This document shows, in pieces, positions 14,401-36,565 of a stretch of DNA of 64,000 nt. The notes beneath the pieces are model-generated. The model was not told the origin of the DNA, made no database searches, and saw only the letters and a program-made list of their open reading frames with translations. Within the stretch, counting starts at the first letter, position 1, and every line of letters starts with the position of its first letter. Position numbers and translations under genes: made by a program. This stretch comes from Octopus sinensis (Eukaryota). The stretch lies in contig NW_021832396.1 in assembly GCF_006345805.1 (NCBI RefSeq), positions 4,873 to 68,872 on the forward strand. The letters run 5' to 3'.

Positions 14401-14733
14401 TTGTTTTCTTTTTGTTGCTCAGTAGCGTTGATTGTCTACTGATTTCATTAAGAATCGACAGATCTTTTCTCATTTTTTGTATTTTGTTTTGGATGTTATT
14501 TATCCACGGGGTTTGTTTGGGTGGTGGTACTCCTGTTTGGATGGGTTTGAGTGAGTATCCAGCTTCTTTGGTGGCTGCAGTGGCTGCTGCGTATACTAAG
14601 TCATTTAGCTCAGTGATATCGCTTTTTGTTTCAGTGGCTATTAGTTCCGTGACGGCTAGGTTTATGTTGTTTATAATTGATGTTGTTGTTTTGTCTATTT
14701 TGATTTTTGGGAGGTATGGTCGGTGGTCCATTT
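11452..14733 (-). mobile_element. R4/Dong-clade non-LTR retrotransposon (RT plus C-terminal CCHC and restriction-like endonuclease), 5'-truncated, frameshifted, flanked by (ATT)n on both sides
   Basis: Motifs NYRP, QKGCRKGSYGC, WIDYKKAFDSIPH, GIFQGDILSP, YMDDLKLY, CRICGDGQETLNHIISGC, RHD, NRPDIVV, DVSIP, KLSKYKDL in successive minus-strand ORFs. Confidence 0.93.
13112..13327 (+). mobile_element. SINE family A inserted into the Dong RT, 12-bp TSD catatataaaag
   Basis: TSD at 13100-13111 and 13328-13339; head ggtggcgagctggcag..., B-box gagttcaaattcc. Confidence 0.92.
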
Positions 14734-14737
14734 TTTA

Positions 14738-14781
<44 letters not shown>

Positions 14782-14825
14782 CATCATTATCATTATTATT
14801 ATCATTATTATTATTAATATTATTT

Positions 14826-14863
<38 letters not shown>

Positions 14864-14886
14864 TACCACAGCAAATCTCTTATATT

Positions 14887-15510
14887 TATTTCTTTACTAC
14901 CCACAAGGGGCTAAACATAGAGAGGACAAACAAGGACAGGCAAAGGGATTAAGTCGATAACACCGACCCCAGTGCATAACTGGTACTTAATTTATCGACC
15001 CCGAAAGGATGAAAGACAAATTTGAACTTAGAACGTAATGGCAGACGAAATACCTGTTTCTTTACTGCCCATAAGGGGCTACACACAGAGGGACAAACAA
15101 GGACAGACAAACGGATTAAGTCGATTATATCGACCCCAGTGCGTAACTGGTACTTATTTTATCGATCCCGAAAGGATGAAAGGCAAAGCCGACTTCAGCG
15201 GAATTTGAGCTCAGAACGTAGACTTTTTCCATGTATGAAGGAAATGGATTAAATGTAAAATATTAATGAAATATAATAATAATGAAATAAAAGGTGGCAA
15301 GCTGGCAGAAACGTTAGCACGCCCGGCGAAATGCTTAGAATTTCACCTGCCGTTACGTTCTGAGTTCAAATTCCCCCAAGGTCGACTTTGCCTTTCATCC
15401 TTTCGGGGTCAATTAAATAAGTACCATTTACGCACTGGGATCGATGTAATCGACTTAATCTCTTTGTTTGTCCCCTCTATGTTTAGCCCCCTGTGAGCAA
15501 TAAAGAAATA
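14887..15510. mobile_element. Cluster of SINE A copies (two partial on -, one on + at about 15291-15510)
   Basis: Sequence identity to 13112-13327. Confidence 0.85.
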
Positions 15511-15704
15511 AATATTAACGAAATATCTTTTTCCTACCTCTTAAAATCATATATGATAATACCGAATAGATTTTCCTGGCTTGCCAGTCCTCAGTCAAAC
15601 CGCCCAACCCATGCCAGCATGGGAAGCAGACGTTAAACGATGATGATGATGATATATATAATTATAATAGATTGTTACCCATTCGATTTTTAGGTAAACT
15701 TTGT

Positions 15705-15747
<43 letters not shown>

Positions 15748-15774
15748 TCTCTCTCTCTCTCGCCCAACACAAAT

Positions 15775-15849
15775 ATGAAACATTCTGGTGCCAAAAGTAG
15801 ATTTCCTTTTTTGCGATTTTTGGCGACGATACTTGTGGGGAGAGAGAGA
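15775..15849 (+). other. Candidate upstream exon of the Ig-like receptor gene (5' UTR or in-frame N-terminal extension)
   Basis: Ends at a consensus donor GTAAGT (15850); the ATG at 15775 gives 25 codons in frame with ACC-ATG after the 16888 acceptor. Not independently supported. Confidence 0.3.
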
Positions 15850-16179
15850 GTAAGTGTCAAAAAATAGTGCAATGAGTGTAAAAAAATGTGTAGGAAACGA
15901 ATATGAAGAAAAATACGCGTAAAGCAACGGGAGGATGAGGAGAGGACCTCGGAAAATTCACAAGATCCGAGTTTTTCCCTTGTAACTTTTAGGAAAATGG
16001 GGTTTTTTTTCAATGAAATTTTATATAATTACCTTTCAAACGGCATACATTACGATTATAAAGTAATTTGTAGGGAGAAGACTTTTGGAAAATTCCCAAG
16101 AATTCCAAAGAATTTGAATTCAGAACATAAAGACTTTTGAAATACCCCTAAGCATTTTGTCTGGTATTCTACCCGACTG

Positions 16180-16815
16180 GCCTCGTGCCGGTGGCATGTA
16201 AAAAGCACCATCCAATTGTGGCCGTTTGTCAGCCTCGTCTGGCACCTGTGCCAGTGGCACGTAAAAAGCACTATCTGATCGTGGCCGTTTGCCAGCCCCA
16301 TCTGGCCCCTGTGCCGGTGGCACGTCAAAAAAACCATCCGATCGTGGCCGTTTGCCAGCCTCGTCTGGCACCTGTGCTGGTGGCACGTAAAAAGCACCAT
16401 CCGATCATGGCCGTATGCCAGCCTCGTCTGGCACCTGTGCTGGTGGCACGTAAAAAGCACCATCCGATCGTGGCCGTTTGCCACCCTCGTCTGGCACCTG
16501 TGCTGGTGGCACGTAGAAAGAACCATCCGATTGTGGCCGTTTTCCAGCCTCATCTGGCACCTGTGCTGGTGGCACGTAAAAAGAACCATCCGATCATGGC
16601 CGTTGCCAGTCTCGTCTGGCCCCTGTGCCGGTGGCACGTAAAAAGCACCCACTACACTCACGGAGTGGTTGGCGTTAGGAAGGGCATCCAGCTGTAGAAA
16701 CATTGCCAGATCAGACTGGCCTTGGTGCAGCCTTCTGGCTTCCCAGACCCCAGTTGAACCGTCCAACCCATGCTAGCATGGAAAGCAGACGCTAAATGAT
16801 GATGATGATGATGAT
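16180..16815 (+). mobile_element. SINE family C with (GAT)n tail and an internal about 60-bp unit expanded about 7 times
   Basis: Repeating ccgtttgccagcctcgtctggcacctgtgctggtggcacgtaaaaagcaccatccgatcgtgg; 3' end ccaacccatgctagcatggaaagcagacg..gatgatgat. Other copies at 27300-27693, 45740-46035, 49585-49830 (-) and 62295-62710 (-). Confidence 0.88.
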
Positions 16816-16891
16816 GAAGACATTTAAAGTTTTTCATATCAGTCATGCTCCAGCAGTCAGTTTTCATGCTCTAAAAATTATTTTTCAGACC

Positions 16892-16937
16892 ATGGGCCGT
16901 CTAATGTTCTCCTGTCTGATGATTGTATTCTGTTTTT
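16892..16937 (+). CDS. Ig-like receptor gene, signal-peptide exon (MGRLMFSCLMIVFCF, phase 1)
   Basis: Acceptor tttttcag at 16888, Kozak-like accATGG, hydrophobic core, donor gtaagt at 16938. Confidence 0.85.
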
Positions 16938-17720
16938 GTAAGTTTTATTTTGTTTTTGTTTAAGTTTTTGTTTTTTAAATCCTTTTTCCTTAACATTTAG
17001 TTTTCTAAAAATAATTGTTTCAAATATCATTTACATTAACTTGGAGAATAATTTTTTTTTCTGCCAGTTTTTAATGTTTGTTTTTACAAATATGTTGTAT
17101 TATTTATTTGGTTTTAGTCAATATAGTTACAATCATTTTACAACAGTTCTTGTATCATCATCAAATTTTTTTTTTTTTGTTTTTTGACATCTGATCCATT
17201 TTCACATGGCGTACGTCTCAGCAAGACAATTTACGAAATGTCTAAGTGGTACATCCCGAATGTTTTTAAAAATTGTATTGATTCATTTTTCACAATAAAA
17301 ATATTTCAAAAACAAAAAATGTTTGCTGAAGTTTTTGAAGATGATCCAAAAAATATGATGTATGCATATCAGGAGTATTTGACAGTCCCAAAACACTTAG
17401 GAAGCAATGGGTTCTGACAACCAGGATTTTGTTAGAGGTTGGTTATGTCAGTGCATGACCAACCAATCGGATTTCTGAGTGAGAGGCTGGATCTGACCAG
17501 TTAGGACATAAAAACGTGAAACATTTTGGCCCGATATGGCCAGTTTAAATGCTAAAAGGTTAATGTTTTAACTGAGAACCACATTTTCAATGCCTTCTCT
17601 CAAACTACCATTGTATATAATGAGTAATTAGATCTACTAGGGTTAATTATCATTTAATCATTATAACACAAATAGTAAACAATCCTGTTGATCAAAAATA
17701 TTTCTTTTCCTCTTTTACAG

Positions 17721-17759
17721 ATTTCACGAGAGCAGGAATTTATAAAATTATTCAAAGTG
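17721..17759 (+). CDS. Ig-like receptor gene, 39-bp exon a1 (YFTRA/GIYKIIQS; completes the signal peptide and starts domain 1)
   Basis: Acceptor tttcttttcctcttttacag, donor gtaaat; phase 1-1; joins the flanking exons without stops. Confidence 0.8.
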
Positions 17760-18431
17760 GTAAATGGATTTACAAACCTTTTTCTCCCTTGAAACTAAAG
17801 TCTTTTCAAATCTGTCTTCTATCTCTTTCTCTTAACTCAGAAGATTTAGTCACTGTTTGGGGTGTCTTTTTATTTTTTGCTTTTTAAAAAAATTCTTGGG
17901 CAGTTCACTAACACAACTCAGTCACTGATATTGTTCTTTAGATAAAGCTACAGCTTTGAATCTGCCCATGGTTATCTCCCTTTGGCATTTCCCATTGATG
18001 AAGGTTAAAGAGCAAGAAACACGCATTGGGGAGTCCACTGAGGAGTGGTTTACATCTCAGGTTGAGATGGCTGTTGGGGGTCCGTATAAGATTTTGTTGC
18101 TAAAATTTATGTACAATTAATTGGTTTTAGCTTTACAGTACACCAAATTTTTAATTAATTTTTTAAATACAGTTCCTAATAATATTTAATTATAAAAATA
18201 GGATTTTTTAAAACATGAAATGTTTATAAGGGCCCACCGAGCAAAACAGGAATCAAAAGGGACCATAGGTGAAGAATGGTTGAAAATCATTGTGTTATAG
18301 GTAAGCACTGGGCAGATATGGTGTTTTCACACCTTTTACCATCAGTGAGAAATCCTTCTCTTTGGTAAATGCAGTAAATTTGCCTTTAGAAGTTAAAATA
18401 TGTCACAAACATATTTTAACTAAGGAGCACA

Positions 18432-18468
<37 letters not shown>

Positions 18469-19822
18469 GTCATCATCATGAAATGTCCATGGATTGAGCT
18501 GTTCAATAGGATCCAGCAAGCCACAGGATTGTGTTGAGCTCCAATCCCTGAATAGGCAGGGCTTATATTGTTTGATGACCCACCTAACACCGACCACTTT
18601 ACAGAGTGTAGTGGCTGCCCCTTTTCATTGCACCACCATTCATTTGGTTACTGTTATAGCTGGGATTATGATAGCCATTCTAAATAGGATTGCGGTTATC
18701 ATGTCTATCATCATAATTTGATGTCCACGGCCCCTTTTTAATGTCAATCATTTTACAGAGTAATTGAGCCTTTTTTTAACATGCAGTACCAAATAACTGG
18801 AAAGACAGAGGGAAAAGAAGAAAAAACCCTTGACTGGGGAGTGTTGCGGAGATGGATGTGGCTTTACACAATGTGTTGAGAGGTTGAAGTATGATAGAAG
18901 GACAGGAACATGTGTCTTACTGTAGAGAGTATATATGGTGATACTGCATTATATAAGGCAGGGCATGAGTAAATGGATAGATATGTGATTTATTCAGACA
19001 TACACCCATGTCTGACGAACACACTGAATATTTTTTTTAACCCCTTAATATAGGGTTTGGACGTAGAGAAGTTTCTCCATTTCATATTGAAATTGGTCCC
19101 TTAATCTTTAAGTTTCCAGATTAAAGCCAAAAGGGTTCTTGTCATGGTATCTATTAAAACACTTGAGAACCTCCAATGAATACATAAATTCAAGGAATGA
19201 GATTTTTTTACTGTATGTCCGCATCTCAGAAAATACATGTTGTCAGAATTTAAAAGGATACTACCAGACACTTAGTTAAGCATTAACATCTGGTTTACAT
19301 CTGGTTTACATCTGCTTGCCATAGAATTATTGTAATGTGGGTTATCTCCCTTGCTGCCTTAACATATACATACATAACAACATACATAGAAATAAGAGCT
19401 AAAGTGCTCTGGTGCTGCAGTCAATGCACACGCTTGCATACATACATACTGGCAGCAACTGCAAATGGGTGAAGGTGGCAGTCGTGGTATGCCTGGACCG
19501 TCGACAGTTTGGGTTTTAACACAGAAGCCTCATCACCGACCCTGTTGTTGAGTGCTTATTTTAAGCATGGTACTTATTCTGTTGGTCGTTTTTGCTGAAC
19601 TGCTAAGTTATAGGGATGTGAACACACCAACGCTGGTTGTAAAAACAGTGGTGGGGGAAAACACTGACACACACACACACACATGATGGACTTCTTATAG
19701 TTTCCGTCTACCAAATCCACCAGGTTTTGGTTGGCCCCAAGGTTATTGTAGAAGCTTACCCAGACTGAACCCAGAACCATGTGGTAGGGCAGTAATCTTC
19801 TTACTTGATTTCTTTATTTCAG

Positions 19823-20071
19823 AAAATGTTGTGCTTGGAGGAAGTGCTAGACTTTCTATATATATTCCAAACATGAAGAGACCCACGGTGTGGAAATGTG
19901 GAAACTATAAATACGAATGTGACAGAACATGCGCTAATGGCCCTGAATATACAGTTACCCACAGTGGTAACCATTCTGTTCTTTGGATCCGAAAAGTAAC
20001 AAAGGAATGTTTGACTTGGATGTTTGAAGACGACAATATTAATGTTGGAAAAATTCATTTGAAAATAAACA
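19823..20071 (+). CDS. Ig-like receptor gene, 249-bp domain exon Ig1 (ENVVLGGSARLSIYIP...VWKCGNYKYECDRTC...SVLWIRKVTKECLTWMF...KIHLKIN)
   Basis: Acceptor tttctttatttcag, donor gtaagg; phase 1-1; open frame; beta-strand pattern of a V-type Ig fold (the fold assignment is inference). Confidence 0.88.
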
Positions 20072-20085
20072 GTAAGGAAATGATT

Positions 20086-20117
<32 letters not shown>

Positions 20118-21425
20118 GATAAATGTGCAAAAGCTACCTTTATCAAAGGAAAAAATGATAGAAATATCCAACGTTAAGTAATTTCTTTTATTTGCTACAC
20201 AGGCTAAGGATAAGGGGACAACACAATGATAGGCGTAAAGTGTAGGGAGTTTACATGTTATGCAATGATAATAAAATATATAAACGATTTAACTTAAACG
20301 AAGATAGGAAGTATAGATTGCATGCAACAACAGGAGATAAAAGAAAGAGATGACAGTGTTGTGTCTAGGGATAACCAAGGAATTTCATCATCCAAGATCT
20401 CCCTGAACACCAAGGGCATGTGACCCCTCCGATTCCTACTCTCCAACCCAAACAACTGGTTGTTTTTAAAGAGGCACGGGTGCCTCTTGTGTGTCACTCG
20501 TACAAGTGTTTTTCACGTGTCACCGACACTGGCCATGGCCACAATTTCACTGAGCTTGACTTGTCTTCTCAAGTACAGCAGATGGTCAGAAATCTCGGTC
20601 ACTGGTCATTGCTTCTGTGAAACTCAACATCTAAACATCATATTTCACCGACCCGTCCCAAATCTTACCGAGTCAACCTCTTCCATGGTTTGCCTCCACA
20701 GTTAGAAATCGGTACTTCTTTACACAACTGTCGTTGTACATTTAATTTTAGAATGACATTATCGGATAGTTGAGAAACTTTAATATGGGCCAGATATGGT
20801 TGGTTTAATCCTTCAAGGTTCAGATCACTCTGTCAAGTGTAATGTTCATTCATTTGCATTGTTTTGAATTAATCATTCATTATCTTCTTACGACATTTTG
20901 ATGATGTAATTGTTTATCTTTAAACTGACATTGTAGGGTAGGAGTGAGAGGCTGGATCTGGCCAATTTGAACATAAAACAGGTAGAATATTTGGCGTGGA
21001 TATGGCAAGTTTAAATACTAAACAATTAATTCTTTAGCATTTAGATTAATCTATCAAATGTAATGCTTATAAATTCAAAATGTTTTGAATTAATTATTCA
21101 TTATCTTGTAGATTTCAGATTTAGATGATTGCTTAATTTTACAATGACATTGTAAGTTTGGTGTGAGAGGCTGGATCTGACCAGTTTGGATATAAGAAAG
21201 GTGAAACATTTTGGCCAGACATGGCCAGTTTAAATGCTAAATGGTTAATGTTTGAACTGAGAACCACATTTTCAATGCCTTCTCTCACACTGCCACTGTA
21301 TATAATGTGTAATTAAATCTACTCGTGTTAATTACTATTTAATTATTGTAACAGAAATAGGAAACAATCTTGTTGATCGAATGTAAAATCTGAAATTCAA
21401 AAGTCCTTGTATTCATCTTCCACAG

Positions 21426-21482
21426 ATTTGGCAAATGCAAACGATTTGAGGACAGAAGGAGTTTATAATATCACCCAAAGTG
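21426..21482 (+). CDS. Ig-like receptor gene, 57-bp exon a2 (NLANANDLRTEGVYNITQS)
   Basis: Acceptor catcttccacag, donor gtaagt; the last 39 nt are paralogous to exon a1 (30/39 identical); phase 1-1. Confidence 0.82.
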
Positions 21483-22197
21483 GTAAGTGGATTACCTTAT
21501 CCCCTTTCGCCTTCTAAACTAGACACAACTTTTTCAAATCTCTCTTCTATTTCTTTCACTCAACTCATAAATTTTATTCACTGTTTCATTTGTGTTTTTT
21601 GATTTCTTAAAACATTTATTCCGACCAGGCAGTTCACTAGCACAACTCAGTCACTGATAGTGACTGCTCTTTAGATAAAACAACAGCTTTGAATCTGCTC
21701 AGGTTTATCTTTCTCTGGAGTTTCCTATTGATAAAGGCTAATGAGCCAGAATCACTCATCGGGGAATCCACTAGAATAGTGGTTTTTAACCGGGGTCAGT
21801 ATGGCTGTTGGGGGTCCATATAGGATTTTGTTGTTAAAATTTATGTACAATTAATTGGTTTTAGCTTTACAGTACACCAAATTTTTAATCAATTTTTTAA
21901 ATACAATTCCTAATAATATTTAATTATAAAAATAGGATTTTTTAAAACATGAAATGGTTATAAGGGTCCACCTGAGTGAAATAGAAATCAAAAGGGTTGC
22001 ATTGTGTTATAGGTAAGCACTGGGCAGATATGGTGTTTTCACACCTTTTACCATCAGTGAGAAATCCTTCTCTTTGGTAAATGCAGTAAATTTGCCTTTA
22101 GAAGTTAAAATATGTCACAAACATATTTTAACTAAAGAGGGATTACTTATGATTGGCAGTTTCACTCTTAGGGCACAAATAATAATAATAATAATAA

Positions 22198-23100
22198 TCC
22201 TGGAAACATGGATCCTAGAAACAGTAGCCATGAACAAGGTAGCACCAATAATTATAAAATATATAAAACTCTCTATGAATAAATAGCGGACAGTGCTACA
22301 GCTCCAAACAAAAGGAGGACACATAAAAAGCAAAGCCTTTCTCATTAGAAGAGGAATATTCCAGGGAGACATGCTCTCTCCACTCCTTTTCTGCTTGGCA
22401 CTGACAACTTTATCTGACATACTCAACAGAACTAGATGCAGATGGCAACAACAATCAGCCACCTCTTATATATATGGATGACCTAAAACTGTATACTACA
22501 AATGATAAACAGCTGGAAACATTATTACAGGCAGTACATGGATTTACCAACGAAATAAATATGAAATTTAGCTTATAAATAAATATAAAATGTGCAAAAC
22601 AATCTTGAAAAGAGGAAAACTAGTTAAGAGTAGCGACATCAAACTAAATAAAGCAAATGAAATAAGAGAATTAGAAGCCAGACATACAAATATTTGGGAA
22701 TAAAAAAAAAGAATACTATAGACAAGTTAGATTAATACTGAAAACAGAGCTCAATGCAAAAAACAAGATAATAGGTATCAACACTTTAGCCGTCCCAGTT
22801 ATAAGTTACAGCTACAATATCCTTAACTTGACACTAAAGGAACTAATCAAAATAGACAGGAAAACAAGAAATATAATGACAGGATCTAGGATGCACCACC
22901 TAAAATCTGACACAGAAAGACTATATATGCAACGTATAGAAGGTGGTAGAGGCCTTATACAGCTGGTAAACTATTATAAATTAACCACCATAGGACTGCA
23001 AAAATACCTACTTCAGAAGCAAGGAAAACTAATACAAATAGCCACAAAACACGAACAAAACAAAAAAAAACTGTTTTCAGTCTTTAAGGAAGCTGTCAAA
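22198..23100 (+). mobile_element. Second R4/Dong LINE fragment (RT region), degenerate, starting at an (AAT)n tract in the a2-Ig2 intron
   Basis: GIFQGDMLSP, YMDDLKLY and IEGGRGLIQL homologous to the 11452-14733 element; stops and frameshifts. Confidence 0.88.
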
Positions 23101-23941
23101 AGAGACCGATAGAATAAGTACTGGGCTTCCAAAGAATAAGCTCTGGGGTTGATTTGCTCGACTAAAGGCAGTGCTCCAGCATGGCTGCAGTCAAATGACT
23201 GAAACAAGTAAAAAGAGTGAAGAGAATGTATGTACATAAATATTTCAAATTTTTTTGCCACAAGGGCAGCTTGCGGAAGGTGGGGATGAGTGGATTACAG
23301 TGACCCCAGTATGCCACTGGTACTTAATTTATCAACCCCAAAAGGATGAAAGCCATAGTCGACCTCAGTGAAATTTGAATTCAGAACGTAGTGGCAGGTG
23401 AAATACCGCTTAGCATTTTGCTTGGCGTGCTAACAATTCTGCCAGGTTGCTGCCTTGACATATATATACATAACAACATACATAGAAATAAGAGCTAAAG
23501 TGTTCTGGTGCTGCAGTCAATGCACACGCTTGCATACATACATACTGGCAGCAACTACAAATGGGTGAAAGTGGCTGTCGTGGTATCCCTGGACTGTCGA
23601 CAGTTTGGGTTTTAACACAGAAGCCTCATCACCGACCCTGTTGTTGAGTGCTTATTTTAAGCATGGTACTTATTCTGTTGGTCGTTTTTGCCGAACTGCT
23701 AAGTTATAGGGATGTGAACACACCAACGCTGGTTGTAAAAACAGTGGTGGGGGACAAACACTGACACACACACACACACACACAGATGATGAACTTTTTA
23801 TAGTTTCCGTCTACCAAATCCACTAGGTTTTGGTTGGACCCAAGGTTATTGTAGAAGCTTACCCAGGGTGCCATGCAGTGGGACTGAACCCAGAACCATG
23901 TGGTTGGGCTGTAATCTTCTTACTTGATTTCTTTATTTCAG

Positions 23942-24190
23942 AAAATGTTGTGCTTGGAAGAAGTGCTAAACTTTCTATATATATTCCAAACATGAAGAGA
24001 CCTGTGGTGTGGAAATGTGGAAACTATAAATACGAATGTGACAGAACATGCGCTAATGGCCATGACTATAAAGTTACCCACAATGGTAACCATTCTGTTC
24101 TTTGGATCCGAAAAGTAACAAAGAAATGTTTGACTTGGATGTTTGTAGATGACAATATTAATGTTGGAAAAATTCATTTGAAGATAAACA
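23942..24190 (+). CDS. Ig-like receptor gene, 249-bp domain exon Ig2 (paralog of Ig1, 9 aa differences)
   Basis: Same splice sites as Ig1; 13 nt differences counted in 249 bp; open frame. Confidence 0.88.
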
Positions 24191-24204
24191 GTAAGGAAAT
24201 GATT

Positions 24205-24490
24205 TATAATAATAATAACAACAACAACAACAACAACAATCATAATGATAATAATAATGATAATAATAAAAATAATAATAATAATAATGATAATAATAAT
24301 AATAATAATAATAATGATAATAATAATAATAATGATAATAATAATAATGATAATAATCATAATAATCATAATGATAATAATAATAGTGATAATAATAATA
24401 AAAATAAAAATAATAATAATGATAATGATAATAATAATGATGATGATGATGATGATGATGATGATAATAATAATAATAATAATAATAATA
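24205..24490. repeat. Compound (AAT)/(GAT)/(AAC)n intronic microsatellite
   Basis: Directly visible just after the Ig2 donor. Confidence 0.95.
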
Positions 24491-24568
24491 AGGTTGGGAT
24501 CAAAAGGGTTCAGCCTTATTGATATTACTATCTTTTCTTCAAAACAAAAAGTATCTGTTTTCTTGTAG

Positions 24569-24783
24569 GACTTGAAGCAGATGAAGAAACAAAAGATTGT
24601 GAAGCTGATGGATCAGGAATACCCACCTCTACCATTGTCGTCATTTTTGTACTTTGTCTTGAAAACATCATTCTCATAATCTTGTGGTTCAAATTCAAAT
24701 TGCCTCCTTACGATTGGTGCAGGAACCGTGTCACCCGCAGGATACCTCGTAATGAACCCCAGAATCAACAGGTTGAGGTATAA
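24569..24783 (+). CDS. Ig-like receptor gene, terminal exon TM-A (acidic stalk, TM TIVVIFVLCLENIILIILWF, tail ending NQQVEV*)
   Basis: Acceptor gttttcttgtag; phase 1; in-frame stop TAA at 24781-24783. Joined CDS = 46+39+249+57+249+215 = 855 nt = 284 aa plus stop. Confidence 0.85.
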
Positions 24784-25865
24784 AAATGCTATGTTTTGCG
24801 ATTTTTTTTTCTTATAGACTTTCAATGATTGTATTAGTATATTCTGTTGTGTCTGGGGAGAGTCATTTTCTTTTTGTGCCTTATGATGTAACACATTTGA
24901 TGTAGTGGTTTAGTCTCATCTTTTCAAAAACCCTGCTCAAGTGGTGGGGGGGGAACAAACACAGACACAAAGACCCCTTCCCCCATACACACATATGTCT
25001 GTGATTATAATTTAATACAATTCATTTTTATTATGGATATTCATGTAATGCATGCAACTTGACACATAGTAACCACCCAGGGGCAATACCTGGGGCACAT
25101 CTACACATGAATGCTCCAAAGACTTGCCTCATGACTTTCACAAAAATGTATATTTTTTAAGGAAATTTTCTACAAATCCACTTCAGATGGTGTAGATTCT
25201 TTTTATACTCGAATTTGATGTGACAAAATTTTCTGCCAAAAAATGTGATTTTTTTCTGAAAGCTATTTCTAACAAGTCAAGAAACCACATAAAAGTTATG
25301 CTTGTGTTAATCTCCATGGCAATAGCAATATGTGAACAATGGATGATTTCGATTGGCTAAAATTACTTAACTTTAAGTGCATGTAACTTTTTTATTATTT
25401 GTTTTTAGAAATAATGAGTGTGATTTTCATTATCCGTATCCAAAACTCCATCAGAACTATAATTTTTTTAAGTAATCAGGTGAAAATAGGCGTATTGATA
25501 CAGTTTTGTAAAGTAATGAATGCCATGAAATTCATTTTCACCATAGATCGATACATAAACAGCTAATATCATTTAAAATTTGCGAATTTTGGATAATTTT
25601 ATGTAGGTGCCTGTTTCCATAACAACAAGCCAAGTTGCTTACCATGTGTTCTTTTTCTCACTTTTTAAAAGCTAGTGTTTGGAACACAAGTTTATTTGAA
25701 GTCTTGATGGAAGGTTTTATTTTAGATCTCTTTAAAACAGGGAATTCATACAATAAAAACAAAGGCAGTTTTCAGTAGGTTGGGATCAAAAGGGTTCAGC
25801 CTTATTGATATTACTATCTTTTATTAAAAACAAAAAGTATATGTTTTCTTGTTCATCTTTTGCAG

Positions 25866-26208
25866 ATGAGGGTGCCGGAAGCAGCAGATCAGCAAACGGA
25901 TCAGGAAGCAGCAGATCAGCAAATGGATCAGGAAGCAGATCAGCAATGGATCAGGAATCAGCAAAGCAGCAAATGGATCAGGAAGCAGCAGATCAGCAAA
26001 TGGATCAGGAATCAGCAAAGCAGTTAATGAATCTGGAACCAGCATCCCCACCTGCGCCGTAGTCATCATTTCTGTACTTGGTCTTGTAGCCATCCTTCTC
26101 ATAATCTTCTCTGTCATATTCAAGTGGCTTCTTTACATTTGGATCAGGAACCGTGTCAACGAGTGGATATCTCCTAATGAATACCAGAATCCACCGGTTG
26201 AAGCATAA
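25866..26208 (+). CDS. Alternative terminal exon TM-B (27-bp repeat stalk, TM CAVVIISVLGLVAILLIIFSVIF, tail ending NEYQNPPVEA*), with a 1-bp deletion at about 25945
   Basis: Acceptor catcttttgcag; gap-free paralogy to TM-A over 54 codons; exon length 343 is 1 nt short of frame. Could be an assembly error, a null allele or a soluble isoform. Confidence 0.7.
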
Positions 26209-27198
26209 AAATGCTATGTTTTTTTATTTTTTCTTCTTATAGACTTTCAATGATTGCATTAACATATTCTGTTGTGTCTGGGGAGAGTCATTTTCTTTTT
26301 GTGCCTTATGATGTAACACATTTGATGTAGTAGTTTAGCATCATCTTTTCAAAAACCCTGCTCAAGTGGTGTGGGGAATAACACAAACCCACCAACACCT
26401 GTTGTCAAGTAGTGGGGAGGGAGGACAAACACAGACACAAAGACCCCTTCCCCCATACACACATATGTCTGTGATTATAATTTAATGCAACTCATTTTTA
26501 TTATGGATGTTCAGGTAATGCATGCACCATGACATATAGTAACCACCCAGGGGCAATACCTGGGGCACATCTACACATGAATGCTCCAATGACTTGCCTC
26601 ATGACTTTCACAAAAATCTATATTTTTTAAGGAAATTTTCTACAAATCCACTTCAGATGGTGTAGATTCTTTTTATACTCGAATTTGATGTGACAAAATT
26701 TTCTGCCAAAAAATGGGATTTGTGTTCGTACGTATCCCACCAATTTAATTTTTCATATTAAATTCCGATATAATTACAATCTACAAACTCTGAAAGGAAT
26801 TTGTAGAAATTTTCATTTTTCTGAAAGCTATGAAGAGACAAAGTCAGTGGAGCATATCTGTGTGTGTGTGTGCTAATTGGTTTCACATAAATATTTTTCA
26901 TTATAATTTTAAAGACTACATTTTTATTATTATTATTATTGCCTTTGTTTCAATAAATTTTGAAAATAAAGAATTCAATGAAATAATTTTGTCCTTACTA
27001 AGCTAGTGTTTGGAACACAAGTTTATTTGAAGCCTTGATGGAAGGTTTTACTTTAGATCTCTTTAAAACAGGGAATTCATACAATGAAAACAAGAGTGGT
27101 TTTCAGCAGGTTGGGATCAAAAGGGTTCAGCCTTATTGATATTACTATCTTTTATTAAATACAAAAGGGTATATGTGTTTATTGATCATCTTTTGAAG

Positions 27199-27818
27199 AT
27201 TAGCAAACAACAAGATTTGGATCTAATGTATCCAGATGTATCCTACTCACTACAGATAGCGAAACAACATTTAAGAAGTTGATTATCCGAGTGGGATCAC
27301 TGCCAGAGCAGCTGTCTGGCTTCCGTTCCGGTGGGCACGTAAAAAGCACCATTTGAGCGTGATCATTACCAGCGTTGCCTTACTGGCATGTGAACAAAAC
27401 ATCCTAGCGAGGTCGTTGCCAGTGCCGCTGGACTGACTCCTGTGCACGTGGCACATAAAAAACCACCATTTCGAGCATGGCCGTTGCCAGTACCACCAAA
27501 CTGGCCCTCATGCCGGTGGTACGTAAAAAGCACCCACTACACTCTCGGAGTGGTTGGGCGTCCAGCTGTAGAAACTCTGCCAGATCAAGACTGGAGCCTG
27601 GTGCAGCCATCTGGTTCGCCAGCCCTCAGTCAAATCGTCCAACCCATGCTAGCATGGAAAGCGGACGTTAGATGATGAGGAGGAGGAGGAGGAGGAACCA
27701 GCATATACATCTATGCCATAGCCATCCTTCTCATAACCCTGTTTGTCATAATCCGATGCTAACACTTCCTGTCCATTCCATACTTTCTAAAGAACACCAG
27801 AATTCAATGGAGGCATAA
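27199..27818 (+). pseudogene. Third, degenerate copy of the terminal TM exon (TM-C), interrupted by SINE C
   Basis: Same upstream intron block (ggttgggatcaaaagggttcagcc at about 27109); acceptor mutated to gaag with immediate TAG in phase 1; remnant GTSIYIYAIAILLITLFVIIRC* at 27694-27762; homologous gcataaaaatgcta end. Confidence 0.7.
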
Positions 27819-28199
27819 AAATGCTACATTCTGTGAATTCCATTTTTCAACATTGGCCAACCTTGTTATAGACCTTCACAGATTTCCATGCTGGCATGGG
27901 GCTGGACGCTTTGACCAGAGGTCATCAGCTGAGAAGCTGCACCGGGTCCCTGTCTGATTCAGCTTCATTTCTATGGCTGGATGACCTTTCTAATGCCAAC
28001 CACTCCTGAGAGCGTCCTAGGTGCTACTGGCAGGTGGGTTTTACCACATGGCAGAAGAACAAGCCAACCCTCTCCACTAGAGTGTGTTTCTTTAACACTC
28101 AGGCTGTGGTGGTTGGGTCCCCTTCAGTACTTGTTGGCTATAATTTTAGAAACCCTGAAATTCAAATTCAGGAAATATTCTTTTCTGCTCTAAGCACAA

Positions 28200-28560
28200 A
28201 GCCCGAAATTTTGGGAGAGGGGATCAGTCGCTTAGGTCGAACCCAGTATGCAACTGCTACTTAATTTATTGACCCTGAGGGGCCGAAAGGCAAAGTTAAC
28301 CTCAGAATGTAAAGACAGAAATACCTATTTCTTTACTACCTACAAGGGGCTAAATACAGAGGGGACAAACAAGGACAGACAAACGGATTAAGTTGATTAT
28401 ATCGACCACAGTGCGTAACTGGTACTTATTTAATCGAGCCCGAAAGGATGAAAGGCAAAGCCAACCTTGGCGGAATTTGAACTCAGAGCGTAGTGGCAGA
28501 CAAAATACTGCTAAGCATTTCGCCCAGCATGCTAATGTTTCTGCCAGCTTGCCGCCTTAG
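28200..28560 (-). mobile_element. SINE A, one full plus one partial copy
   Basis: Reverse-complement identity to 13112-13327. Confidence 0.85.
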
Positions 28561-30235
28561 ATATTTTTTTATTCAAAATTCAGGAAATATTGAATTTTAA
28601 AGAAATAATAAATAAAAACAAAAAGATGGTAGAATTTTGTTTATAAAATTTTATTTTCGCTTCTGTAAATTTCATCATGAAATTCAAATCTGTCCTGATG
28701 CTTAGAACTTGTCAGAGACACAGCATTTACATAAAAGTATACGTCATACATAAAAGAAAAAACAAAAAAAACAATGTACATATAGCAACAAGAGCACACA
28801 CGGAGAAAAGGGGGCAAACTTAGGGTTTCTAGTATTGGGGGGGGGGCTGTTACACAGACACGTACACACATGCACTGAAACGTGTGTGTATAAACTGTGC
28901 CCAACACAAGAGCTTGTTAAAAACCTGCAATACAAATTGTGTGTGCGCGTGTGTATATATACATACATATACACACACATAAATACATATACGTATTTAC
29001 TCATACACACATATATATATATAATATTAGGGAGTATATCCAAACTTATTACTTATTATATTATATTTAACTTTTGGTTAGTTAAAAAAAAAGGTTAAAA
29101 GTTTAAGAATTTAAAAATTTTAAATTTAAAAATTTTAAATATAAATTAAAAATTTTTTAATTTTAAATTTTATATATATATATATTGTATATTATATTAA
29201 TTATATTTATTTTTTGCTTTTATGTTTTGGTTTATGTCTATCACTGTTTGAGTTGCCTAATAGTGGCTTTATCTCTAATTTATATATATATATATATTAA
29301 TAAATGAAATAAAACATCTGCATATATATAAACATATATGTACGTACCTACCTCTACATGTACATATACACGCATATATGAGTACAGGACACCAAAAGGA
29401 AGTCGAACACAATGAGAAACGGAAACATAGACACAAACCAAAGGAACTGGACATTTATTAAAAAACAGCAAATATATATATAAGGGGATGAAAACAATTT
29501 TATTCAAATTTCTTGGTACTTCAAGTTTCAAAACATGACGCTAATCTTAGAAATTTCCAATGGCTAACAATTAGCATCAAGCTTTGAAACTCGAAGTACA
29601 AAGGAAACTAAATGAAACAAATTTGATCCACACATGTAACTCCCAATGAATGATTTGAGTGCCCTTCTTTTGTTTCTCCACTCATATATATATATATACA
29701 CACATAATATATAAGGAATTAAGATCTCATTACAGACCAAACTATAAACTCTTAGTAAAAGACAGTCTAAAAGCTTGAAAAAGCTATTAACAAAGGCAAG
29801 GTTTGGCCTTAGCAACAAAGACCAACCATTCACTGTGTCTATAGGCAATGATAACCGGTGTTGTACATGCCAATTAATTCATACTGGCCCATGTATGAAC
29901 ACAAAAAATGTGTTGTAGTGTCCCCAATGTATTGTAGTGTCCTCTCTGTCTAAACTCGTATGGTGAATAAAAAATAGTACAGTTGAAACCAATGAACATG
30001 ACCGTCACCAAAACCATATGAACCTGAAGATTGCATAAATGCAAGAAAGTATACTAGTCCAATAAGAATGGACAATTAATATTTCATTTGTTCGTTAAGA
30101 ATGGACAATTAATATTGCGTTTCATACCTTTTTACTGTTTTATTTTATATGATTATAAATAAAATGTGAAAAACAGAGTTGGAATTCCTTTGAGTAGTAT
30201 ATTCTTCTATACACAATCATACATACCCCTTTGTA

Positions 30236-30307
<72 letters not shown>

Positions 30308-30385
30308 CACCGTGACTGACCAGGCTATCAGATGTTGGTACACACCGCTGGTCACAGTGCGCTTCGCATTGTTTTCGCCTTCAAA

Positions 30386-30563
30386 TGACAGGTTTATCAC
30401 AAAATCGACATTCAAGAGAAAACATCCAGCTCAAGTTATGGCTTCGGGTGTTGTGGCTTCCGATGGAAAGAAAATTCCTATAAAATTCTACAAAGCTGAT
30501 GAAAAGATCAATGTTAATACTTACTAAAAGACTCAGAGATACCAGGTATTGACATGGCTTAAT
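30386..30563 (+). mobile_element. Tc1/mariner (maT/DD37D-like) transposase fragment; copies at 32105-32282 and 37577-37752
   Basis: KHPAQVMASGVVASDGKKIPIKFYKADEKINVNTY*KTQRYQVLTWL resembles the KHPxxVMVWGVVASDGK motif of this family; internal stop. Confidence 0.75.
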
Positions 30564-33500
30564 TTTATCCAAAATCCTCCAAAGATGCTCTCTGTATTGG
30601 CTGACAAATATTTTGCTCTAATAAAATCATAGAAATCAAACGTGACATTGAAGATGTTACAAATGGAATAAAAACACATCCAGAAGCAATAAGTGGTTCT
30701 GCTTTAGAGTGTCGCAAAATGTGACCTTGTCGCAGGTCAAAGAAATGATGCCACGAAACATTAAACAAAGGAACTCAAACAATCCAAGCGGTTTGTGTTT
30801 AAGTGTGATTCATTATATAAGCTCTTTGTCGGATCATTTTAGCTTCCTTCTACTTCTAATGCTTTGCAAAAAGCAAAAGAGAAGTGAAATATAGACAAGC
30901 AACAACCGGCGAGTGCAGTTCTGTTGTTTATCATTTACGAATTATTCACTTCTGCAGTTGGATAAGATAAGGAGAACTGCGGATCCATGAAATAAGCTGC
31001 CAGACGAGATAGTGAAGATGCCGACGACCGCTCGGTTCAAAGTCTCCCTTGACCAGAAATGGCCTGAACTCTTTGTATGACCACCCTCCCTGTACATAAC
31101 TCCCTGTCCCACTACATGGCCTTGCTTTTGCTTTCTGAACCAATAAAAATTGAATTGAATCAAAACAATCTAAAGATGCCCAGTGAAATATAGACAAGCA
31201 ACAACCGGCGAGTGTGGTTCTAGTGTTTATCATTTATGAATTATGCAGGTTTGATAAGATTAGGAAGAAAATGGAGGAAGAGAACTTTAATTATGTTAAA
31301 GAATTTCTCCAAAAATATCCAAATAAAATAAGTTGTTCTTTGTATTTGCTGCTAAATATTTAACAATACTACCTTAAACTTCAGAAATGCTATTAAAAGC
31401 AGGAGCTGAACAATTCTGTCCTGGTGCGGACATAAAGTCGCTTTGGACAATACGAAAGGAACGCATCTTCTTAGACCCACGTTCAGTACTTCTTGACTGA
31501 TCCTTCATTTTTGGCAGAGTAGCTATATTCTTGGGGCCAATGTCCAACATACAATGCTTCCACGAATTTCATACTGGCCCATATATGAACACAAAAAATG
31601 TGTTGTAGTGTCCCCAATGTATTGTAGTGTCCTCTCTGTCTAAACTCGTATGGTGAATAAAAAATAGTGCAGTTGAAACCAATGAACATGACCGTTACCA
31701 AAACCATATGAACCTGAAGATTGCATAAATGCAAGAAAGTATACTAGTCCAATAAGAATGGACAATTAATATTTCATTTGTTCGTTAAGAATAGACAATT
31801 AATATTGCGTTTCATACCTTTTTACTGTTTTATTTTATAAGATTATACAGAAAACTTAGGATAGGGACTAATTATATCAAAAGATTTATCAAAAGAAATC
31901 CAGATAAAGTAAAACCTTCTGGGTGTTGGCTTTTCAAAGTTTTTGAACAACATTGAAAATGTCGCAAATTTTATCCAAAATCCTCCAAAGATGCTCTCTG
32001 TATTGGTTGGCAAATATTTTGCAATAATAACATCCAAGAGATCAAAGGTGACATTGAAGATGTCAGAAACGGAATAAAAACACATCGCATTGTTTTAGCC
32101 TTCAAATGACAGATTTATCACAAAATCGACATTCAAAACAAAACATCCAGCTCATGTTATGGCTTCGGGTGTTGTGGCTTCCGATGGAAAGAAAATTCCT
32201 ATAAAATTCTACAAAGCTGATGAAAAGATCAATGTTAATACTTACTAAAAGACTCAGAGAAACCAGGTATTGACATGGCTTAATTTTATCCAAAATCCTC
32301 CAAAAATGCTCTCTGTATTGGTTGGCAAATATTTTGCTCTAATAAAATCATAGAAATCAAACGTGACATTGAAGATGTAACAAATGGAATAAAAACACAT
32401 CCAGAAGCAATAAGTGGTTCTGCTTTAGTGTCCCAAAATGTGACCTTGTCGCAGGTCAAAGAAATGATGCCACGCCACGAAGTACTGAACCCACGTTCAG
32501 TACTTCTTGACTGATCCTTCATTTTTGGCAGAGTTGCCATGTTCTTGGTGCAAAAAGTCCAACATACAATGCTTCCACGAATTTCATAAAAAGCATTAGA
32601 AAGTATCGACTTGTTTAATTAACCAAGCAACTATATGCACAAGTCCATTAGGAATAAAACAAAGAAAAGTGACTGAAGCATTGAAAATATCACAAAATTT
32701 AGCCCAAACCATCCAAATGATAGAAGATGTTGTTTGTATTGTTTGGCAGATATTTAGCAGAAACGTTAAGGGAAATCAAAGAACGTGACATTGAAGGGGT
32801 CACAAACGGAATGAAAACACATCCAGAAGCAATAAGTGGTTCTGCTTTAGAGTGTTGCAAAATGTGACCATGACACAGGTCCAGGAAATGATGCCTCTAC
32901 ACTTTATACAAGACAGTTGTGTCCCCAAAGTCCACCCCCTCCTCACCGTGGTGGGGACGCTGGCAATGGGTAGTGTCAGAGCTCTGCCGTCGGGAACTTC
33001 GGTTCCTGGTAGAGCCACCAAAGGCAGATTGGTCTGACACCGAGTGGTATTAGGGCCACAACCCTGCAGACGGGGCTCTAGTGAAAATCAAAGTGGTTCT
33101 GTTTTAAGTACGACCCGTTATATAAGTTCTTCGTCTGATCATTTTAGCTTCTTTCTATTTCTAGCATCTTTCGTTGACAAGAAATGGAGTTTGATAAGAT
33201 TACTGATAAGATTGTGAAAGATGCTTGGGAGAAATGAAACGAAACCATCAAACCCTTTGCAAAAAGAAAATGAGAAGTGAAATATAGACAAGCAACAACC
33301 GGCGAGTGTGATTTTATTGTTTCTCATTTAAGAATTATTCACTTCTGCAGTTGGATAAGATAATGAGAATTGAGGAGGGAGAATTTAATTATCTATCTCT
33401 TTTCATTTTCTATAATTGCTAAGTTTATCAAAATGTACTTAAATTACACACATGTGCCACTATTGGTGCGTGGAAAGTGTCCGGTATGAAACCATTCTGT

Positions 33501-34409
33501 GGCACAAAAAAAAGGTTAGTGATCACTGCATTAGACAAAACTCAGGTTTCCAGTATAAATGCCATTTTAAGTGAGATTTTAAAAACCATCACCTTCTTTG
33601 TATTATTGTTTACCTCTTTTTATAAGGGTTTTCTTCAAAATCCTATCACTATCAGCTCTTAGCATGTTCCACTCAAAAGATGGAACAGTGAAATATAGAC
33701 AAGCAACAACCGGCGAGTGTGGTTCTAGTGTTTATCATTTATGAATTATGCAGGTTTGATAAGATTAGGAAGAAAATGGAGGAAGAGAACTTTAATTATG
33801 TTAAAGAATTTCTCCAAAAATATCCAAATAAAATAAGTTGTTCTTTGTATTTGCTGCTAAATATTTAACAATACTACCTTAAACTTCAGAAATGCTATTA
33901 AAAGCAGGAGCTGAACAATTCTGTCCTGGTGCGGACATAAAGTCGCTTTGGACAATACGAAAGGAACGCATCTTCTTAGACCCACGTTCAGTACTTCTTG
34001 ACTGATCCTTCATTTTTGGCAGAGTTGCCATGTTCTTGGTGCAAAAAGTCCAACATACAATGCTTCCACGAATTTCATAAAAAGCATTAGAAAGTATCGA
34101 CTTGTTTAATTAAGCAAGCAACTATATGCACAAGTCCATTAGGAGTAAAACAAAGAAAAGTGACTGAAGCATTGAAAATATCGCAAAAGTAAGCCCAAAC
34201 CATCCAAATGATAGAAGATGCTGTTTGTATTGTTTGGCAGATATTTAGCAGAAACGTTAAGGGAAATCAAAGAACGTGACATTGAAGGGGTCACAAACGG
34301 AATGAAAACACATCCAGAAGCAATAAGTGGTTCTGCTTTGGAGTGTTGCAAAATGTGACCATGACACAGGTCCAGGAAATGATGCCACTACACTTTATAC
34401 AAGAAAATT

Positions 34410-36375
34410 GTGTCCCCAAAGTCCATCCCCTCCTCACCGTGGTGGGGACGCTGGCAACGGGTAGTGTCAGAGCTCTGCTGTCCGGAACCTCGATTCCTGG
34501 TAGAGCCACCAAAGGCAGATTGGTCTGACACTGAGTGGTATTAGGGCCACAACCCGGGACGCTAGCAATGGGTAGTGTCAGAACTATGCCGTCGGGAACT
34601 TCGGTTCATGGTAGGGCCACCCAAGGCAGATTGGTCTGACACCGAGTGGTATTAGGGCCACAACCCAGGACGCTAGCAATGGGTAGTGTAAGAGCTATGC
34701 CGTCGGGAACTTCGGTTCCTGGTAGGGCCACCCAAGGCAGATTGGTCCAACACCGAGTGGTATTAGGGCCACAACCCGGGACGCTAGCAATGGGTAGTGT
34801 CAGAGCTATGCCGTCGGGAACTTCGGCTCCTGGTAGGGCCACCCAAGGCAGATTGGTCTGACACCGAGTGGTATTAGGGCCACAACCTGGGACGCTAGCA
34901 ATGGGTAGTGTCAGAACTATGCCGTCGGGAACTTCGGTTCATGGTAGGGCCACCCAAGGTGGATTGGTCTGACACCGAGTGGTATTAGGGCCACAACCCA
35001 GGACGCTAGCAATGGGTAGTGTAAGAGCTATGCCGTCGGGAACTTCGGTTCCTGGTAGGGGCCACCAAGGCAGATTGGTCCAACACCGAGTGGTATTAGG
35101 GCCACAACCCGGGACGCTAGCAATGGGTAGTGTCAGAGCTATGCCGTCGGGAACTTCGGCTCCTGGTAGGGCCACCCAAGGCAGATTGGTCTGACACCGA
35201 GTGGTATTAGGGCCACAACCCGGGACGCTAGCACTGGGTAGTGTCAGAACTATGCCGTCGGGAACTTCGGTTCATGGTAGGGCCACCCAAGGCGGATTGG
35301 TCTGACACCGAGTGGTATTAGGGCCACAACCCAGGACGCTAGCAATGGGTAGTGTAAGAGCTATGCCGTCGGGAACTTCGGTTCCTGGTAGGGCCACCCA
35401 AGGCAGATTGGTCCAACACCGAGTGGTATTAGGGCCACAACCCGGGACGCTAGCAATGGGTAGTGTCAGAGCTATGCCGTCGGGAACTTCGGCTCCTGGT
35501 AGGGCCACCCAAGGCAGATTGGTCTGACACCGAGTGGTATTAGGGCCACAACCCGGGACGCTAGCAATGGGTAGTGTCAAAACTATGCCGTCGGGAACTT
35601 CGGTTCATGGTAGGGCCACCCAAGGCAGATTGGTCTGACACCGAGTGGTATTAGGGCCACAACCCAGGACGCTAGCAATGGGTAGTGTAAGAGCTATGCC
35701 GTCGGGAACTTCGGTTCCTGGTAGGGCCACCCAAGGCAGATTGGTCTGACACCGAGTGGTATTAGGGCCACAACCCGGGACGCTAGCAATGGGTACTGTC
35801 AGAGCTATGCCGTCGGGAACTTCGGTTCCTGGTAGGGGCCACCCAAAGCAGATTGGTCTGACACCGAGTGGTATTAGGGCCACAACCCGGGACGCTAGCA
35901 ATGGGTAGTGTCAGAGCTATGCCGTCGGGAACTTTGGTTCCTGGTAGGGCCACCCAAGGCATTTTGGTTTGACACCAAGTGGTATTAGGGTCACTACCCG
36001 GCAGACGGGGCTCTGGTGAAAATTCTCAGAGTGTCTGCTTCGGCAACCGGCGGCTCCTCGGTCGTTCTGTCCCTGCGTCTGCGGACAATCTGTGGCAAAC
36101 AGGATGTTCCTACATGTGGGATTGTTGGGGACCGCTTGTGAAATCAACATATTCCCACAAAACTTCTTCCGGAGGACCTCTCCATGCTCACGGGATCGCA
36201 GGTGGTCAGCGTGCGCCGATGGAACCGTGACTGGCTCACTATCTCCAGTGAATTGGCGCAGGACCGTCGTGCGTGGGGTGCCATGGTTCAAGATGCCTCA
36301 AGGGTGGTAGAAGAAGCCGAATCAACCGGCCCCGGATGAATGTCACCACAAGTACAAATACAAGTAAGTATACAA
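34410..36375 (+). mobile_element. Internally deleted RTE-like element whose 5' region is expanded into a 111-bp tandem array (about 34555-35990, 333-bp higher-order repeat)
   Basis: About 13 units of gggacgctagcaatgggtagtgtcagagctatgccgtcgggaac...; the 3' part encodes LAQDRRAWGAMV..* followed by a caagta-type tail (36345-36375). Single-unit copy at about 32908-33090. Confidence 0.7.
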
Positions 36376-36509
36376 GACAATCAAAAGAAAATAAGTTCTA
36401 TTTGAAGGGTGAACGATTTCAGAAGTTTTTTTTGCCAGACTATTTGAGTTTCCCTGTATTTCTAGCAGATTTCGTTGCAAAGAACTACAAGAAGGAAAGA
36501 CTGATGTTG

Positions 36510-36565
36510 TGAAAAATATTTTGGTGGACAAGATGTTGTTTTAGAAATTGACGAATCCAAGTTTA
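36510..36565 (+). mobile_element. Merlin/IS1595-like transposase motif remnant
   Basis: Translates KYFGGQDVVLEIDESKF, matching the GGxxxxVEIDESKF first catalytic motif; TGEC-like (accggcgagtgt) remnants recur in 30.9-38.1 kb. Confidence 0.55.

Follow-up and report, generated by a model that had tools for sequence, protein, structure and literature searches.

The 64,000-nucleotide stretch analysed here (the window; Octopus sinensis contig NW_021832396.1, positions 4,873 to 68,872) carries a gene that ends in tandem copies of an exon for a transmembrane (TM) helix and cytoplasmic tail, and the divergence between these copies is the subject of this text. By protein searches, the region was assigned to the 3′ end of LOC115229017 of O. 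sinensis, on a contig of 68,872 bp, and the joined exons of the window reproduce its RefSeq isoforms X1 (336 amino acids) and X2 (332 amino acids) letter for letter. By isoform reconstruction, all exons lie on the plus strand: exon 1 (16892-16937) supplies the start codon and signal peptide MGRLMFSCLMIVFCF, exon 2 (17721-17759) a short phase 1-1 linker FTRAGIYKIIQS, exon 3 (19823-20071) a first immunoglobulin (Ig)-like domain, exon 4 (21426-21482) a linker LANANDLRTEGVYNITQS, and exon 5 (23942-24190) a second Ig-like domain ending in a phase 1 donor. All ectodomain exons are phase 1-1, and the domain order is signal peptide, two Ig-like domains, TM helix, and tail. An AlphaFold2 model (25 family members; mean pLDDT of 74) contains two beta sandwiches at 83-94, one of them encoded by exon 3, followed by a TM helix (residues 229-253) and a helix at the C terminus. 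In Foldseek, the top PDB matches are titin Ig tandems and scFv or antibody variable domains (E of 2e-7). Pfam returned no family match on the ectodomain, and PF07679 is found as a precomputed annotation on relatives of the protein. These relatives, seen only in Octopus species, are small type I membrane proteins encoded in a tandem cluster, and they contain one to five copies of a Cys-containing domain of ~100 residues. Judged by the predicted fold, the product of LOC115229017 is an Octopus-specific type I membrane protein of the immunoglobulin superfamily (IgSF) with two Ig-like domains.

The orthologous locus of Octopus vulgaris (OX597842.1:27452568-27498109, hereafter L004) aligns to window positions 7632-24254 and 24937-36721 at 94-98% identity. 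Synteny is broken between 24254 and 24937. At the (AAT)n microsatellite of this place (24206-24491, unstranded), O. vulgaris holds ~17 kb of extra sequence between the second Ig exon and its first TM cassette (L004 17403-34421). This extra stretch encodes a third, membrane-proximal Ig-like domain (L004 19223-19486) that has no counterpart in the O. sinensis gene. As a control for the comparisons below, the Ig exons of the two orthologues are 5-7% diverged, with ratios of nonsynonymous to synonymous divergence (dN/dS, omega) of 0.6-1.9, and their introns are 2.5-5% diverged; relative to this control, the TM/tail exon is an outlier within the gene. The Ig exons also have a history of their own. 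When 19823-20071 and 23942-24190 are compared with L004 12937-13185 and 17090-17338, orthologues differ about as much as the internal repeats do, at 12-18 of 249 nt. Omega lies close to 1 and the second Ig exon of O. sinensis is nearest to the first of O. vulgaris, a pattern that suggests conversion between the two repeats.

Self-comparison resolves the 3′ end of LOC115229017 into three tandem TM cassettes of ~1.3 kb, namely A, B, and a dead C, each with an intron end, stalk, TM helix, short tail, stop, and untranslated region (UTR). All lie on the plus strand. Cassette A comprises an intron end (24491-24568), whose last 31 nt have been remodelled to give a new acceptor TAG/GA, an exon for stalk, TM, tail, and stop (24569-24783, with the X2 acceptor at 24581 and the TM/tail codons at 24619-24780), and a 3′ flank (24784-25251) that is diverged in its proximal part (24784-24835) and orthologous to the flank of the O. 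vulgaris counterpart in its distal part (24937-25251). Exon A also contains a 5′ splice site, GAG/GTATAA, which ends the exon at 24777 and extends over its final codon and stop (24781-24783). In cassette B, the intron end (25669-25865, acceptor AG at 25864-25865) is followed by the exon as annotated (25866-26027, stop at 26025-26027), by an intact 54-codon TM/tail relic of near-ancestral sequence with its TAA (TM-B, 26044-26208), and by a 3′ flank (26209-26721) with a 45-nt insertion relative to A at ~26375-26420. TM-B gave only sub-threshold chance matches in Pfam. Cassette C (27000-27830) was delimited by self-comparison and by the alignment with L004; its intron end (27000-27203) is still 92-95% like that of the other cassettes (~92% for B), and it is interrupted by a repeat insertion (27203-27680) before a TM remnant with deletions (~27690-27820). 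Exon and 3′ flank of C are strongly diverged despite the well-kept intron end, and C is dead in O. vulgaris too (L004 36482-37350), with the identical repeat insertion and deletions.

Two short blocks recur among the cassettes. A 47-nt block precedes each acceptor (24491-24537, 25777-25823, and 27108-27154); it is invariant in B and in two O. vulgaris cassettes (A′ and V1, introduced below), differs at one position in A and in the O. vulgaris B′, and is retained in dead C. It may act as a splicing element within the intron or as a hot spot of conversion. A 65-nt block at 24836-24900 returns at 26265-26329 and in O. vulgaris (L003 23699-23758; L004 34048-34107 and 35744-35803), and is far better conserved than its surroundings; four cassettes of the two species carry it unchanged, and A has two differences. 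The same 60-mer recurs on many chromosomes with 95-100% identity, frequently in closely spaced inverted pairs, and the block resembles an arm of a miniature inverted-repeat transposable element (MITE) or foldback element. Rfam gave no match on 24200-28000.

Exon A is in frame with the Ig-exon donor. In the annotated isoforms, the coding sequence ends with A (from 24569 in X1 or 24581 in X2, to 24777) joined to 25866-26024, so that A and B are read in series. Exon B is then translated in phase 0 as MRVPEAADQQ...NQQSS up to the stop at 26025-26027, and because this stop precedes it, TM-B is 3′ UTR in both X1 and X2. The reading is permitted by a 27-nt minisatellite (25877-26044, 6.4 copies) that is open in all three frames and yields ADQQMDQEA in phase 0 and GSGSSRSAN in phase 1. 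When B is entered in phase 1 from the Ig exon, a GSGSSRSAN stalk results, the frame is lost at ~25945, where a shortened repeat unit has AA instead of AAA at 25945-25946 in this assembly, and a stop at ~26060 is reached before the TM segment. The independent annotation of O. vulgaris contains two proteins (P0034 and P0035) with the same junction and frame, from A′ to B′, as well as an isoform (P0010) that terminates at the stop of A itself. Since the annotated proteins of both species use phase 0, exon B is a duplicated exon that is re-read in a new frame. The splice from A to B deletes the final Val of A and adds a Gln-rich tail; the C terminus of A (24775-24783) reads VEV-COOH, with VEA in B and DEV in V1, and resembles a class III PDZ ligand.

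The first-pass annotation had taken A and B for alternative TM/cytoplasmic exons, and against the annotation this part of it does not stand: annotated isoforms splice A into B, and TM-B is used by no annotated protein and is out of frame in this assembly. Mutually exclusive TM exons are likewise not what is found, as B is out of frame from the Ig donor and the annotated transcripts hold A followed by B. A word search with both tails in 5.8 billion sequences did not find a TM-B-using protein in O. sinensis. In B′ of O. vulgaris, phase 1 stays open across stalk and TM, and the TM-frame stop has changed from TAA to TAC. B was thus probably an alternative anchor once, and no annotated protein uses it as one today.

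The comparisons that follow use five cassettes, namely A and B of the window, A′ and B′ of L004 (which also bears C′), and V1, the single cassette of a neighbouring O. vulgaris paralogue (locus L003). Further matches in O. sinensis (C27 at 18.98 and 19.13 Mb, C13134, and C12305) lie outside this set, and at O. vulgaris L001, L002, and L005 family genes are present but no cassette of the A/B type was found. Among the five, A stands apart in what it encodes. Its helix reaches a 19-residue Kyte-Doolittle maximum of 2.89 (3.3-3.4 in the other cassettes) and carries Glu15 and Asn16 mid-helix, its juxtamembrane YIW motif includes Asp32 and Cys34, and its tail has a net charge of +3, where the other cassettes have 0 to -3. 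B, B′, A′, and V1 all keep the tyrosine of the NEYQxPP motif, but A has lost it (Y47P). No canonical immunoreceptor tyrosine-based inhibitory or activation motif (ITIM or ITAM) was found in the cassette tails examined. Signalling modes of paired receptors differ by such changes in TM charge and tail tyrosines, and by analogy the changes in A would be of that kind.

Aligned without gaps over 54 codons, 24619-24780 and 26044-26205 differ at 39 nucleotides (75.9% identity) and 27 amino acids, and 3 codons have changed in a purely synonymous way; a script thereby reproduced exactly the counts that the first-pass annotation had made by hand. The differences are distributed 13/18/8 over the codon positions, and the TAA stop falls at the same point in both copies. 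For all ten cassette pairs, NG86 counting (with Fisher tests) places omega above 1 (1.8-10). The multi-cassette test, our own GY94 M0 fit with likelihood-ratio tests (LRT), gives omega of 3.8 for the five cassettes (p of 0.0008), and over three topologies and three frequency models omega stays at 3.7-5.0 (p of 0.0001-0.0009). The excess persists without codons 37-44, which include a converted block (omega of 2.7, p of 0.02), without A (2.9, p of 0.047), and when only the annotated-coding A, A′, and V1 are used (4.6, p of 0.003). It is concentrated in tail codons 27-54 (omega of 7.0, p of 0.002), while TM codons 1-26 give 2.1, which is not significant. A conservative count of one event per codon per branch returns 51.5 nonsynonymous to 4 synonymous events (p of 0.002), and changes over the cassettes fall 24/32/12 on the three codon positions (p of 0.011).

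Several mechanical sources of this pattern were considered and rejected. Multinucleotide clustering is not seen, with 11 adjacent changes observed and 9.2 expected, and a shift in mutational spectrum is not either, the mix of transitions and transversions being the same in exon and flanks. Other sense frames contain stops and cannot give rise to the periodicity, and for the open antisense frame the maximum of variability would fall at its codon position 2. A further comparison uses a local neutral class, made up of synonymous sites and the adjacent noncoding sites (31 nt upstream of exon A and 55 nt downstream of it). Between A and B, nonsynonymous sites differ at 33 of 125 and the neutral class at 15 of 123 (p of 0.006), and between A and A′ the same comparison gives a p of 0.005. 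We take the replacement excess to be accelerated and probably adaptive protein change, concentrated on A and on the tail.

The contrast with the flanks, on which the first-pass annotation had relied, is real but needs to be read differently. The flanks were said to be ~95% identical, and 24826-25245 differs from its partner at 18 of 420 aligned sites (95.7% identity) plus one 45-nt indel. Nonsynonymous exon sites (33/125) differ far more often than this flank (18/420, p of 2e-11), and over the whole set the tree length per site is 0.42 in the exon and 0.10 in the distal flank. The coding sequence does diverge faster, as claimed; the flank, however, is an unfair yardstick. Between A and B, synonymous divergence reaches 0.185, compared with a flank value of 0.044 (6/36.7 vs 18/420 sites, p of 0.0085), and because it is four times that of the flank, the flank is not valid as a clock for this pair. 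The noncoding sites next to exon A point the same way (9/86, or 10.5%, vs 4.3% in the distal flank, p of 0.035), and silent and adjacent noncoding sites together are 12% diverged vs 4.3% (p of 0.004). In cassettes other than A, such sites match the distal flank (for B and A′, 5/121 vs 13/341, p of 0.79), so that exon and flank have had an equal history there and an unequal one in A-B. Moreover, part of the A flank is the dispersed, often inverted 65-nt repeat, and flanks are ~95% alike even in comparison with a paralogous gene whose ectodomain dS is 1.2. About half of the contrast between 24% in the exon and 5% in the flank is therefore history or local mutation of the core of A and not protein selection.

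The history in question is that of a patchwork. B and B′ behave as orthologues do (TM exon 95.1% identical, flank 98%), whereas the exons of A and A′ are only 78% identical, with distal flanks that are 96.3% identical; in all paralogous cassette pairs, flanks are 94-97% and exons 75-90% alike. The diverged core of A consists of the exon and roughly 30-55 nt on each side. When the 39 differences between A and B are polarised with A′ and V1, 22 are derived in A and 7 in B (all of these common to B′), and 10 are ambiguous. Flanks are ~95% alike everywhere, yet divergence in the core of A is ~3 times higher, silent and adjacent noncoding sites included, a combination that results from cassette exchange and patching. 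Patching has also reached into the exon itself: in A, codons 39-41 and 44 are ACC CGC AGG..CGT, a reading that B′ of O. vulgaris almost matches, with AAC GAG TGG in O. sinensis B, A′, and V1. This block, shared by A and B′ against the tree, is a short conversion tract. Structural features are similarly scattered. The DEETK stalk of A is absent in A′, B, B′, and V1 but occurs in two O. sinensis paralogues, P0036 and P0038, two insertions common to A′ and V1 are missing from A, and A and B share a 3-nt insertion. A plain orthology of A with A′ after a simple deletion was rejected, as these features of A match B and other paralogues. When the window gene is compared with the V1 gene, the ectodomain is old (dS of 1.2, dN of 0.24, omega of 0.2) and the cassette young (dS of 0.10-0.13, with flanks ~5% apart); taken over the comparisons with V1, cassette dS ranges over 0.04-0.18 and flanks are 4-5% diverged. 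Such discordant ages of adjacent segments within one gene pair are a mark of concerted evolution or cassette exchange, and the cassette has therefore moved recently between old paralogues. On these alignments, a mosaic history of the cassettes can be regarded as established.

We give about an even chance to the reading in which this mosaic history and a real surplus of replacements in the TM/tail exon jointly explain the contrast between A and B. Cassette A would be the in-frame membrane anchor, and cassette B a near-ancestral duplicate whose repeat-rich 5′ part was co-opted, in another frame, as an optional C-terminal extension on A; the TM part of B would by now be UTR, and cassette C dead. 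Unequal crossing-over and short-tract conversion have demonstrably swapped and patched cassettes between paralogous genes, and in addition a surplus of replacements would have arisen in the TM/tail exon, mostly in the A lineage and the cytoplasmic tail, behind which we infer positive or diversifying selection. A number of points weigh against this. The sample is small, with 54 codons and five non-independent cassettes. In the formal dN/dS check, the A-B pair alone lies above 1 without reaching significance (NG86: dS of 0.185, dN of 0.324, omega of 1.76, Fisher p of 0.27; maximum likelihood: omega of 2.65, LRT p of 0.058). The block shared by A and B′ against the tree violates the assumption of a single tree without recombination, and recombination and multinucleotide events are known to inflate codon-model tests (10.1101/165969). 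The branches of B and B′ carry 13.5 nonsynonymous to 1 synonymous change (not significant), and because these copies, maybe untranslated in the TM frame, show the excess too, part of it could be non-selective. Furthermore, no donor of the unique residues of A was found among the cassettes that were read, and in both species the junctions from A to B come from annotation.

The most serious competitor, which we hold possible but doubtful, would dispense with selection altogether: the core of A would stem from an older lineage or an unsampled divergent paralogue, the flanks would have been homogenised, and the predominance of replacements would be chance plus clustered or complex mutations. The raised silent and adjacent noncoding divergence of A (p of 0.004 for both classes together, p of 0.0085 for synonymous sites) speaks for such an origin, as do the DEETK stalk missing from the other four cassettes but present in P0036 and P0038, the indels that separate A from A′ and V1 and link it to B, the conversion block within the exon, and the lack of significance in pairwise dN/dS. 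It fails to account for nonsynonymous sites that exceed even the local neutral proxy (p of 0.006 and 0.005) or for omega above 1 without A or without the block; also against it, no annotated protein has an A-like TM, and the best genomic matches to A reach only 85-86%. The question raised by the first-pass annotation, i.e., whether conversion of the flanks alone accounts for the contrast, is answered in the same terms: history inflates the contrast and conversion extends into the exon, but the excess over the local neutral class (p of 0.006) is left over. That annotation's own model, in which A and B are mutually exclusive terminal exons providing two anchors kept apart by diversifying selection, now looks improbable. 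Both copies do keep 54 open codons, a hydrophobic helix, and a stop, both have good acceptors, and B′ in O. vulgaris is open through stalk and TM; in this assembly, however, B entered from the Ig donor frameshifts and stops before the TM, isoforms of both species read B after A in another frame, no TM-B protein appeared among the 5.8 billion sequences, the TM-frame stop of B′ is lost (TAC), and the divergence is mostly one-sided, on A. Least probable of all, and in our view very unlikely, is decay under relaxed constraint, be it of one redundant copy or of a whole gene drifting after the loss of its third domain. The window gene does lack the membrane-proximal domain of O. vulgaris, its recent ectodomain omega is ~1, B is frameshifted, and C is dead. 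Drift, however, does not exceed the neutral rate, and the nonsynonymous sites of A show 2-6 times the local or distal neutral divergence; A and TM-B are free of stops and indels, and the 24/32/12 periodicity is the reverse of that expected under neutrality. Overall, the first-pass annotation is confirmed in its observation and partly supported in its interpretation: in the formal dN/dS tests, a replacement excess in TM and tail is significant over the five cassettes (omega of 3.8, p of 0.0008) and not for the A-B pair alone.

The surroundings of the gene are rich in repeats. GC-rich satellites follow it downstream (34445-36001, 40741-42703, 43565-44198, and 44439-45612; arrays of 111 bp x 14, 152 bp x 13, and 32/64 bp) and are common to the O. 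vulgaris locus. Upstream, an element of the long interspersed nuclear element (LINE) type lies on the minus strand (11814-14734) with reverse-transcriptase-like frames of 226, 214, and 283 amino acids, and a decayed LINE-type copy occupies ~22200-23100 in the intron before the second Ig exon.

If the replacement excess holds, the locus would be a rare case in which adaptive change falls on the anchor and cytoplasmic tail of a membrane protein and not on a binding surface. It would lie, moreover, in a lineage-restricted cluster of Ig-like receptors in a cephalopod, and very little is known of immune and recognition receptors in that group. The locus also offers a clean example of a terminal exon cassette exchanged among old paralogues and of a duplicated exon re-read in another frame, and it shows why nearby noncoding DNA in tandem arrays cannot be presumed to be a neutral clock. 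A more far-reaching picture, speculative and as a whole unlikely, would make the TM/tail cassette a swappable, diversifying signalling module of this octopus-specific cluster, with A as the anchor of the "other mode" and B reused as a tail. Cassettes would move between old paralogues and then come under positive selection mainly in juxtamembrane region and tail; A, with its acidic/polar helix pair, lost tyrosine, and basic tail, would be newly derived; and the frame-shifted exon B would serve as a Gln/Asp-rich tail that masks the VEV end of A. By analogy, the system might then be a cephalopod counterpart of activating and inhibitory receptors, or a host factor whose anchor is chased by an antagonist.

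KIR, LILR, and fish NITR are paired activating and inhibitory IgSF receptors encoded in tandem clusters. The octopus genes share with them similar Ig-like ectodomains combined with sharply different TM/tail modules, as well as conversion and unequal crossing-over within the cluster; the Glu in the TM segment of A and its missing tail tyrosine may be a comparable difference between forms. In contrast, the octopus genes have no sequence homology to these families, a canonical ITIM or ITAM is absent from the cassettes, and the charge that A acquired, a Glu, is acidic. Exons 17.1 and 17.2 of Drosophila Dscam1 are alternative TM exons that are mutually exclusive and both used. Here, too, TM-encoding exons are duplicated in tandem at the 3′ end of an IgSF gene, but the annotated transcripts join A to B serially and TM-B is untranslated. 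In snake venom PLA2 genes, coding exons evolve faster than introns and UTRs. Conotoxin genes combine accelerated toxin-coding exons with conserved introns and UTRs (PMC3862624). As in such toxin genes, the coding exon is several-fold more diverged than adjacent noncoding sequence and dN exceeds dS; in contrast to them, the affected part is a TM/tail and not a secreted mature region, and the conserved flanks are partly the work of cassette exchange and a dispersed repeat. A close parallel for the site of change is primate tetherin (BST-2), in which viral antagonists have driven positive selection in the TM domain and cytoplasmic tail (PMC2633611). In both cases the replacement excess falls on membrane anchor and tail and not on a ligand-binding face, although tetherin has a known antagonist and was tested over many orthologues, whereas the octopus comparison is one of paralogous cassettes, 54 codons in length, that have recombined.

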